DNA from: Guillardia theta CCMP2712 | Taxonomy: Eukaryota; Protista; Cryptophyta | Reading direction: 5' to 3' | Length of the DNA: 64,000 bases | NCBI RefSeq assembly: GCF_000315625.1 | Contig: NW_005434655.1 | Location: forward strand, 314,093 to 378,092 | In this document: piece after piece, positions 2,315 through 40,587 of the stretch | Position numbering within the stretch: position 1 is the stretch's first letter | How the letters are laid out: each line of letters begins with the position of its first letter | Notes under the pieces: generated by a model | What the model was told of the DNA's origin: nothing | What the model saw: only the letters and a program-made list of their open reading frames with translations | Database searches by the model: none | Translations under genes and position numbers: made by a program

Positions 2315-4777
2315 TCACAGGAAGAAGTCCTGTCTCAGCTTGTTCTTGCTGTCGCTGCGCCTGGTGGGGGCAGAGCTGAAGACGTTGAAGTGAAAGTCAA
2401 GCGCCTCGTCGACCTCGAGGATCGACGCCAAGTTGCCGCACCTGCCACAAGATGAGGAGCAGGAGCAGGAGCAGGAGAAGGAGCAGGGGCAGGGGCAGGG
2501 GCAGGGGCAGGGGCAGGGAGGAAGGAGAGTGACTATAAGAGAACGGAGGTAGATGAAGAGGTTTGCGAGGAGGTGGCAGCAAGGCAGAAGACCTGTAGCA
2601 GTAGTTGGGCGCTGACCAAACGGTTGACAGCAAGTTGTCAAACATGACCTGCAAGAAGAGAAGAGTCAGCTCGGTTGCGAAAGAGAAGCGCAGGAGTAAC
2701 TGATGTTGGTTGAGACGGAAGAACGTCAGAGCAGAAGCATGGATAAAGAGAGGAGGAGGAGGAGGAGGAGGAGGAGGAGGGCGAGGTGGTGGAGCAGCAC
2801 CAGCAGCAGCGGAGGGGAGGAAGAGGGGGGGAGGTTACGGGTCGTCGTTGTCACCTGGTAGCCTTCCATGCAGAGTTGGTGAGCTCGGAGAACGTGAATG
2901 AGGCCGTTCTCCTGCAGGAATTGCTGCACGACATCGGCGCCGAAGGTGTAGCCTGCTCCTCTTGTGGACTAGTAGAGGGAGTCAGGAGAGGGGAGAGGAT
3001 AGCGGGAGGGATGGAGAAGAAGAGGATCAGGGAAGAAGAAGGGAGGAGAGAAGGACGGCAGGAACGGAAAAGGGAGGAAGGAAAAAGGAGGGAAAGAAAG
3101 GAATAGGGATGGAAGACACGGAAGGAAAAGGACGAACGGAAAGGAGGGGAGGCAACCGGGTTGAAGCCTTCACGATTCGGGTCTGGGTCTGAAATTTTCC
3201 CATTAACGTTCGTCAAGCAAGCGTTGGGCATCCTCGTCACCTGACCAGAGCAGATCTGCCGCTGCGCCGTCACTGGGGATCTGAGGGCAAGGAGTAGCTT
3301 CAGTCGGCGAGCAGGCGCCGAGTGAGGGGGATGACGGGCAAGCAGAGGGATCGAAGAGCGGAAGATGTAAGAACAAGAGAAAAGGAAGGGAGGGGAAGAG
3401 GAGAGGAGGGAGGAGAGGAGAGGAGAGAGAGAGGGGAGTGGATATTCTAATTTCGACCTCCTGAAACCTGTCGATGAGTGATATTTGTTCGATCGTCCAC
3501 ACGGACGGGGAAAGGCCTGGTGTTAGTGAAAGGTCAAGAAAGTAGGAGAACGAGAAGTAGGATAAAAATTCGAGCGAGGAGCAGGAGCAGGAGCAGGAGC
3601 AGGAGCAGGAGCAGGAGCAGGAGCAGGAGCAGCAGCAGGAGGAGCAGGAGCAGGAGCAGGAGCAGGAGCAGGAGCAGGAGCAAGAGGTACCTCCATGCAC
3701 ACAGAATATGGACTCGTCGATGACAGCAGCGAGGGGCAGAAAGTCGAAGAGGTCGGTGAAATGTTTCCTGCCCCGACGACCCATCAGACACCCCCACCTC
3801 AACCCCTCCTGATCTTCTTCTCACCAGACCGCCGCGTCCCCGTACTTCCTGACGCACTCCGAGTAGAACCCGTAGACCTGAACGACCGTCTCAGAAGCTC
3901 TGGGGCTCCAGAGCTCGAGTTGATCGCCCAGCAGCTCCCCTCCTCCCTCCCCACGTCACCTGGGTGATCTGCCGCGACTCGTGGTTGCCTCGAATGAGCT
4001 TGATCCTCCCTGCACGCCTCGTCACTCCCCGCACGTCGGACACCTTGACCTCACGAGGGTATCGCACAGAGAGGCATGCAAGCAGGGAGATCGTCTCCAC
4101 GCTGTGGCTGCGCTGCTGTCTCAGTCCCACACCAGCCCTCCCCCGCCCGACGTTCCTTCCTCTGTCCACAAAGTCTCCCAGGAACAAGTAGTTGGTGCTG
4201 GGACAGAATCCGCCGACTCGGAACAAGTCCAGGAGGTCCTGAGTCGCAGCCAGTGAGGGAGGAAAGAAGTCAGAGCAGCAGGACATGGAACTGTCCATGG
4301 ATGTCGCCGACAACTGTGACAGGCGCTCGTATGCTACACACTGCCAGCAACGAGTTTGAAAGGAGGGACCGCAAAAACGGCATGCGCACCGTTGGGCTCG
4401 TTCAAGAGGATTTCTTTCAACTGCAGGCAGACGTCCGCAACTTCTTCTTCCTTGAGCAGTTCAAGCCTGAAGTCACATAGTCATCGTCACCCTTCTATCC
4501 TCCTACTTCCACTAGACAACTGTTGTGGCTGACTCTGTAAACGACCGTGAAAGTCAGGAGTTCATGAACGCCTGCTTCTGCTTCTGCTCCTGCTCCTGCC
4601 CCTGCCCCTGCCCCTGCCCCTGCCCCTGCCCCTGCCCCTGCCCCTGCCCCTGCTCCTGCTCCTCGCTCCTCGCTCCTCGCTCCTCGCTCCTGCTCCTGCT
4701 CCTGCTCCTGCTCCTGCTCCTGCTCCTGCTCCTGCTCACTTCACTTACCGCATGCATCGCTCGATGCGAGCATCCAT
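2315..4777 (-). CDS. PPG1: Ser/Thr protein phosphatase, PP2A family, PPG1-like (multi-exon)
   Basis: Spliced exons give [135 protein letters not shown] and LSTVWSAP match the PPG1 subtype. Confidence 0.92.
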
Positions 4778-4869
4778 AGCCTAGCCCCTCATCCCCCCCT
4801 CACTTTCATCCCCCTCATTTCCTGATGATACAGGGAGTCGTGGGAATGTAAATTCTGATCATCATTCAT

Positions 4870-38622: not shown

Positions 38623-38650
38623 ACGGAATAGCGAGAAGAGGGTGGTTTGT

Positions 38651-40587
38651 TTATTTCTGTAAATGATACACGCAATCATGTACTGCCTTGCTCCTGTAAT
38701 CCTCCCACATCATGTTCCGTCTGAGGTCTTCTCGAATGTCGTCGTCATCGAACAAGTATTCCATGTCGTCACATAGCTGGTCGCTCGATCAGGTTTTGCT
38801 CAGGTGTCTCAGTGATATACCTCTTTCAATCGCTCTGACAACCCTCCCTCCACAAGCTTGAGAAACGACGATCTTGAAAGCACCAGCAACTCGCTTTCAT
38901 ACTGCCACACGTGTAAATCGAACAAGAGGAGGATAAGAGGAGCAGATTTGATGGTATGTAGATCGAGTGTTACCGATGCGACGACAGTAGCTGACCTTCG
39001 CTTCTTGTGGATCATCGACCATTCCCCGAAGAAGTCTCCCTGGGGACGAGCTCAACAGAGAGAGGAGCGTGTGTCGGTACAGTACCCTCAGCAGCTGCCG
39101 AAGTTCGACATGCCTTGTCGCTCTCCTGTACTTCTATCCCAATTGTGAGCGACTGCATGCTGAGATGTCGACAACCTCAAGGGACGTCGGACTCGCAGGC
39201 ATCCTTAGCTCCGTCCTCGCCCCTCCTTCCCTCCTGCTCAAACCCGCGGGCGCTTGACTGCTGCTCCTGTCCGGTCTCTCCGTCACGTAAGGCAACCCTT
39301 TCCTTGCCCTCACCGCTTGATCCCCATAGACCCGTCGCTTCTCCTCGCGTGCTCGTTTTCCTCCATCCCCTTCGCTCTTGCCTGGAGGACACACCCTTGA
39401 TTGTCATGCACATGGACGCGGGTCTCACGTTGCTCGGGCTGGACATGCTGCTGCGCGGAGGATCCTCCTTGCTTATCCTCTTGATCACTCGGCACTGAGA
39501 GCAGCGACGTCATGTTGTCAGCACCCGCTGGAGGAGACTTACCATCCCTCGGAGGATGAGGAAGAACTCGGACGGAGAGTCTCCTTCTCTCACAACAACC
39601 TCACCAGCCTTGCAGTGTCGGACCTGCTAAGAAGTAAGGAGGAAGCAGAGGCAAGCAGCTGGTTCCTTGGTCGCATCGACAAGTCTCTGAAGCTGTTCCT
39701 CTTCGACCTTCTCAAACAACTTGGTGGATCTGAGGAAGGAGGAGTATTCCTTGACCTGCACGGGTGCAGTCAGAAGAAGCGGAAGCTTCCAAGAGCTTCA
39801 CACCAGGTCCGAGCAGCAGGAGCGATAGAGTTCCCTCGATATCCTTACCACCCCTGACCCACCAGCCTCAACGCGAGCACAAGGGAGGAGTCAAGGAACC
39901 GCTCTGATCGTGAAAGACTTGAACCTCTGAAGGTGATGCCTGACCATCGTCTGACTGCAGGCTCCCGTACGCGTCGCCCGGGAGGAGGAGATGTTGCTCG
40001 GCCTCTTGTTCGCCTCCTTTTCCTCTGCATTCCACTCGCACTGAGCCATAGACAATGATGTCGAGGAAATCACAAGCCTCGTCCTGCAGGTCTATCAAGA
40101 CATGTTTGATTCCTGTAGGACTTACCTTGTTAAGAAGAAATTCATCTTTCCTCAGGTTGTGATAGAATGTACATTTCTGCAACAGCTGAGAGCATGTCAC
40201 AATAAGCTTCAGATTGGCTTTTGCTCTACTTTGAACCAGAGAGCTTGGTTTTGATCTTTGTCTTGCAATGAAGAATAGAACTGAAAGCCTTCGACTTGCT
40301 GCACAAGTGCCTGCAGCTAAAACGACATTCAGAAGCAAGCAGCTCATGCTCACTAGCACTTTTCTCTTGTCTCGCAGATGCCATTCCGGCGTGAGCGATT
40401 GACAGAAGGCCTTGTTGATGTCGTCTGCTAGTGAATCCTGCTCGCGTTTTTCCAAGAGAGCGTCGATCTCATGGTAGAGGGAACGGATGGAGCAAGTGTC
40501 TTGACTCTCCTTGTCTTGCTCCTCATCTGCTGCATTGTGAACACACTCCCTTGAGCCCGAGCCCTCACTCTGTGATCTCCGTCGCAT
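38651..40587 (-). CDS. Cyclic nucleotide-binding domain protein (CNBD-like, multi-exon)
   Basis: LFEKVEEEQLQRLVDATK-VRHCKAGEVVVREGDSPSEFFLILRGMCRV and GDFFGEWSMIHKKRRSATVVA. A degenerate first domain has IIVYGSVRV...PGDAYG. Confidence 0.8.

Follow-up and report, generated by a model that had tools for sequence, protein, structure and literature searches.

Introns that begin with GA and end with AG are already known, although they are rare in most eukaryotes. They are frequent both in Eurytemora affinis and in Oikopleura dioica, account for 3.2% of the supported splice sites genome-wide in E. affinis, and a variant of U1 has been proposed for that species (PMC7072748). In dinoflagellates, GC/GA-AG introns make up 25-74% of all introns (table in PMC7789003; for Symbiodinium dynein genes, see PMC5100056), and the human FGFR GA-AG intron is a single conserved case that reportedly depends on a canonical site 6 nucleotides upstream (cited in PMC7072748). 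A further non-GT-AG class, the U12-type (minor) introns, has been reported in annotation surveys that include the cryptophyte Guillardia theta (PMC11347168). Here we analyze four candidate GA-AG introns, denoted sites 1 to 4 and located in four genes (genes 1 to 4), in a stretch of 64,000 nucleotides of the nuclear genome of G. theta CCMP2712 (scaffold JH992983.1, GCA_000315625.1), hereafter the window, the positions of which are used throughout.

All four candidates are preceded by an exonic AG and end in CAG, with intron starts GAACG, GAGAG, GAAAG and GAACC; inspection of the sequence confirmed the positions, lengths, starts, AG context and CAG ends that the initial annotation had given for them. 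GA-AG splicing exists in G. theta, being shown for one of these sites and probable for two more. At site 1, removal of the segment is real and documented by transcripts; at site 3, the GA-AG intron is part of the official gene model; and at site 4, it provides the best fit to solved protein structures. The proposal that all four genes fit their motifs best with a GA start is supported for three of them, whereas site 2 has a rival in-frame GT donor and stays between the two. We consider it likely that the GA-AG introns are ordinary short spliceosomal introns, predicted to be of the U2 type, in which GA takes the place of GT at the 5' splice site and the acceptor is a normal CAG.

As in E. affinis and O. 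dioica (PMC7072748), the introns in G. theta would be U2-type introns with a GA donor that has AG on its exonic side and an A downstream; the context is AG/GAA at three sites and AG/GAG at the fourth (here and below, a slash within a sequence marks the splice boundary). Unlike those two species, G. theta belongs to the unrelated lineage Cryptophyta, and our literature search, which did not cover the G. theta genome paper, found no report on non-canonical nuclear introns in Guillardia or on GA-AG introns in other cryptophytes. The similarity to dinoflagellates consists in the acceptance of GA beside GT and GC, together with a normal AG acceptor. The proportions differ, however: in contrast to the 25-74% quoted above, 2 of the 19 introns of G. 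theta that were mapped through a transcript or a gene model are GA-AG and 17 are GT-AG, a count that comes from two pre-selected genes. Furthermore, the acceptors of dinoflagellates are followed by a conserved G, whereas the bases after the acceptors of the four G. theta sites are c, g, a and g. The human FGFR intron is similar in that a GA donor is spliced efficiently in an otherwise GT-AG genome, its use being attributed to strong matches in the remainder of the donor; unlike the human case, there is no such GT upstream at sites 1, 3 or 4. U12-type introns share with the present ones the position outside the GT-AG class, but their donors conform to /RTATCCTT. Using this donor plus a TCCTTAAC-like branch site as the criterion, we rejected a U12-type assignment, the donor hexamers of the four sites (GAACGT, GAGAGA, GAAAGA and GAACCA) being unlike the U12 donor.

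Site 1 lies in a gene for a PPP-family Ser/Thr phosphatase. The 48 nucleotides are in frame and contain no stop codon, and in the NCBI and UniProt models of this protein (P0121 and P0001; 306 aa) they appear as 16 residues that link GDFVDRG to SHSVET. The same 90% identity cluster includes two transcript-derived proteins, one from an MMETSP transcript (P0122) and one from a JGI contig (P0123), both of which lack exactly those 16 residues. The source of the latter, the JGI transcript contig L001 (1028 nucleotides), has exons 100% identical to the window and contains the exact exon-exon junction, in which the bases left of 4155 are joined to those right of 4108; the remaining 12 introns of this transcript are all GT-AG. 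As an AG repeat flanks the segment on either side, the junction is ambiguous among GA-AG, GG-CA and AG-GC boundaries, the only ones with which it is compatible; no GT or GC donor yields it.

The protein family provides an additional line of evidence. In 114 of the collected set of 123 motif-bearing proteins, GDxVDRG and SxE are separated by 2 residues, and a spacing of 18 residues is confined to the two genome-derived models of G. theta. Given the spliced transcripts and the family spacing, the site 1 intron is real, the phosphatase mRNA being devoid of exactly 4108-4155, and the public phosphatase model is wrong at this site, with the intron translated into 16 spurious residues within the catalytic loop (GDxVDRG-xx-SxE). 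At least one protein model in the public databases is already wrong on account of GA-AG splicing. The broader expectation that standard annotation systematically mis-models such genes finds an example in this translated intron but is too strong as worded, given that the model of gene 3 already contains a GA-AG intron.

Several minor features of this protein family were observed along the way. The public models XP_005836021.1 and UniRef100_A0A0C3TYQ3 also lack the true N-terminus, which the protein from the MMETSP transcript possesses; when variants of P0122 differing at the N-terminus were looked up as exact sequences, and likewise those of the gene 3 protein P0126, none was found. Two phosphatase open reading frames from metagenomes (P0005 and P0018) also have long insertions directly after GDFVDRG, and it may be that an intron located in or close to the site 1 position is read through in other eukaryotes.

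The product of gene 3 is a secreted protein of 165 aa that matches Big_7 weakly (E = 0.17). The deposited NCBI model XP_005836025.1 (P0126) uses the site 3 GA-AG intron, with the protein reading GAKFPQ/DGSIALF across the junction. When P0126 was mapped to the window, this junction was reproduced only by GA-AG, GG-CA or AG-GC boundaries at 16733-16735, and GT-AG boundaries were allowed at each of the five further junctions that were resolvable (the last one was not). The gene is expressed, with a fraction of 0.33-0.48 of its sampled words present in RNA-type sequencing runs. Ab initio and homology-based predictors are not known to place GA donors, and there is no strong homologue of the protein, from which we infer that the P0126 model stems from transcript data. 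The intron at 16735-16784 is thus probably spliced as GA-AG, as far as can be judged from the deposited model. The Big_7 match is too weak to discriminate between the GA model and the GC model of this junction, and a scan of metagenome contigs with the gene 3 exon produced no matches.

At site 4, within a region encoding a cNMP-binding domain, retention of the segment would introduce an in-frame TAG stop codon, so that some intron must be spliced out. Three in-frame donors are available, namely GA at 39665, GC at 39674 and GT at 39680. The open frames on either side of the segment served as separate queries against PDB; in all 10 chains that were matched by both pieces (chains of PKG I, PKG II and PKA RII-alpha), the K that ends the upstream exon and the V that begins the downstream exon correspond to adjacent residues, for example, 164/165 in 4z07_A, 37/38 in 5bv6_A and 184/185 in 2qvs_B. 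The VDATK sequence preceding the junction aligns to the end of a PKG helix of the ADVLE type (LADVLE-type residues). Considering this adjacency of the exon ends in the solved chains, the GA model is the only one that is free of gaps at this site, and GA-AG splicing is probable here, judging from sequence and structure comparison.

Searches with the gene 4 protein retrieved nothing beyond an environmental genomic contig with 90% identity, which breaks off 9 nucleotides before the site 4 donor, and a protein of Hanusia phi that stops short of the site. This contig (L003; ENA metagenome contig ERZ930071 from PRJEB17505, 1234 nucleotides) shares about 90% of its DNA sequence with the large gene 4 exon (39674-40940 of the window), suggesting that the environmental sample contained a close relative of G. 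theta. Two protein searches detected no G. theta protein that includes this large exon, and it may be unannotated.

Site 2 is located in a gene for an SDP1/TGL-like patatin lipase, where the proposed sequence was confirmed. The NCBI model of the lipase (359 aa) ends at 11126, in the middle of an exon and upstream of the site. The junction is not covered by transcripts, and searches with the flanking exons showed no coverage by PDB, Pfam or NCBIfam entries; a scan of metagenome contigs with a degenerate pattern for the exons beside sites 2 and 4 gave no matches. Arabidopsis SDP1 presumably has the spacing of the GA model at this position, which we take as a lead only and not as a test. Overall, use of the GA donor at site 2 appears plausible, with a probability somewhat short of even, and the gene may instead rely on the GT donor 9 nucleotides downstream, or switch between the two. 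As for the annotation of this gene, the NCBI patatin/DUF3336 model (11126-12676, minus strand) is 3'-partial, and the clear downstream exons NPH..., ...HRCQQ, VVDVGL... and LLIGRQGY... are unannotated.

Table. Host genes, candidate GA-AG introns and competing in-frame introns in the window
Feature	Positions	Strand	Boundaries	Remarks
Gene 1, PPP-family Ser/Thr phosphatase	about 2330-4770	-		hosts site 1
Gene 2, SDP1/TGL-like patatin lipase	about 9300-12676	-		hosts site 2
Gene 3, small secreted protein, weak Big_7-like match	16500-17496	+		hosts site 3
Gene 4, cNMP-binding domain	about 38000-41000	-		hosts site 4
Site 1, GA-AG, 48 nt	4108..4155	-	aag/GAACGT...GCGCAG/cca	between GDFVDRG and SHSVET
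Site 2, proposed GA-AG, 118 nt	10691..10808	-	cag/GAGAGA...CCTCAG/gtg	
Site 2, rival canonical in-frame GT-AG	10691..10799	-	cac/GTTTACCTC	donor 9 nt downstream of GA; computed peptide gains ERH
Site 3, probable GA-AG, 50 nt	16735..16784	+	aag/GAAAGA...GCGCAG/atg	
Site 3, rival in-frame GC-AG	16717..16784	+	cag/GCGCTA	frame and peptide computed; would remove GAKFPQ; unused by deposited model
Site 4, probable GA-AG, 42 nt	39624..39665	-	aag/GAACCA...TAGCAG/gtc	
Site 4, rival in-frame GT-AG	39624..39680	-	ctt/GTCGAT	computed peptide drops VDATK, 5 aligned residues
Site 4, rival in-frame GC-AG	39624..39674	-	gat/GCGACC	computed peptide drops ATK, 3 aligned residues

To compare the donors, we scored seven positions of the consensus MAG/..RAGT, with the 17 GT introns derived from the L001 transcript and the P0126 model as the reference. 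The GA donors match 6, 6, 6 and 4 of the 7 positions, compared to a mean of 3.6 for the GT introns (one-sided Mann-Whitney p = 0.008, with n = 4 and the sites having been chosen in the initial annotation for their AG/G context). This higher match at the other positions would fit compensation for a weak +2 position. In the mechanism that we envisage, which follows the one described for other GA-AG introns, A at +2 would be tolerated through good pairing with U1 and U6 elsewhere in the donor, the positions involved being AG at -2/-1, G at +1, a purine at +3 and, often, A at +4 and G at +5. The suggestion that A, C or T is accepted at +2 whenever exonic pairing is strong gains slight support from the better match of the GA donors, which comes from four sites picked with a bias. 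A-to-I editing was rejected as a route to a canonical donor because it would produce GG rather than GU. A Rfam scan of the whole window detected no small nuclear RNA gene. Motifs resembling CTRAY are visible by eye 10-20 nucleotides upstream of the acceptors. The mapped introns in 2442-4748 and 16622-17367 fall into two length classes, of about 45-57 and about 150-215 nucleotides, and the GT donors in these regions show a very weak consensus past the GT (for example, GTCCTG, GTTGCC and GTCTTC).

The existence of other in-frame donors near three of the sites raises the possibility that the boundaries are misplaced, that is, that all sites except site 1 use nearby canonical donors (GT at 10799 for site 2, GC at 16717 for site 3, and for site 4 either the GT at 39680 or the GC at 39674) and that the GA starts are modelling artefacts. 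All these donors are in frame, and the GTCGA start of the GT alternative at site 4 functions as a donor in gene 1, but the deposited model of gene 3 takes the GA junction rather than the GC one, and both alternatives at site 4 would lose residues that are aligned without gaps to all 10 solved cNMP-binding chains. With site 1 demonstrating that GA donors are spliced in G. theta, we regard misplacement as an unlikely explanation for the three sites taken together; site 2 is where it fares best, the GT donor GTTTACCTC being closely similar to the two donors next to it in the lipase gene (GTTCCTCTC and GTTCTCCAT), with a CT-rich tract after each. Far less probable, indeed very unlikely, is that site 1 is not spliced at all, so that the transcripts reflect template switching by reverse transcriptase or an allele with a 48-nucleotide deletion and the 16 residues are a genuine insertion as annotated. 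The segment is in frame, free of stops and flanked by a 2-nucleotide AG repeat, and the public model takes it as coding; nevertheless, the consensus of two transcript assemblies is the spliced form, removal of the segment gives back the exact spacing of the phosphatase family, a 2-nucleotide repeat poorly supports template switching, and the segment has G at +1, a CAG acceptor and a length typical of the short introns of gene 1. The interpretation of site 1 as an in-frame coding insertion was rejected, considering that neither transcript-derived protein contains it and that 114 of the 123 motif-bearing proteins have the 2-residue spacing. A sequencing or assembly error, with T as the true +2 base and the A a miscall in the reference, would escape detection in transcripts, where intron bases cannot be seen. 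This scenario is extremely unlikely all the same, as it calls for four independent errors, each precisely at the +2 position of an intron; DNA-type runs, which contain 0.86-0.92 of the sampled words from the two stretches tested, also speak against it, although not in a position-specific way.

The interpretation of the four sites as GA-AG introns has to be weighed against several other considerations, which all count against it to some extent. The evidence of splicing consists of assembled transcripts, a deposited model and homology-based spacing, and the A at +2 is as given by the genome assembly. For site 1, both transcript sources may go back to one set of MMETSP reads and hence may not be independent. 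Formally, the junctions of sites 1 and 3 can be read as GG-CA or AG-GC as well as GA-AG, although only GA-AG preserves G at +1 together with an AG acceptor. The support for site 3 comes by way of a deposited gene model, presumably built on transcripts, and that for site 4 is the spacing relative to homologues, with weak E-values for the upstream exon (0.24-1.4). The resemblance of the site 2 GT donor to its neighbors belongs here as well, as does the bias that the choice of sites introduced into the donor-context statistic.

A further possibility, which we put forward tentatively and consider somewhat doubtful, is that GA donors form a regular minor class in the nuclear genes of G. theta, comprising about 1% or more of the introns. 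If so, the +2 position would have been relaxed independently in Cryptophyta, as it has been in E. affinis, O. dioica and dinoflagellates, and hundreds or more of the public gene models would contain false insertions, truncations or skipped exons. Models produced by predictors restricted to GT and GC donors would then carry errors of which the 16-residue insertion in the phosphatase is an example and the truncated lipase model maybe another. As the reference genome for cryptophytes, that of G. theta supplies a protein set in wide use for phylogenomics and for studies of how plastids evolved. Such a class would also bear on the evolution of donor recognition by U1 and U6 in intron-rich protists with a weak donor consensus.

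The window includes two assembly gaps, at 19411-19510 and 27643-27742, which lie between genes that have no role in the finding and overlap neither the four introns nor the genes that host them; the continuity of the assembly across the gaps is therefore irrelevant to the GA-AG introns. Finally, a CT-rich simple repeat consisting of CCTCCCT units occupies positions 18154-18228.

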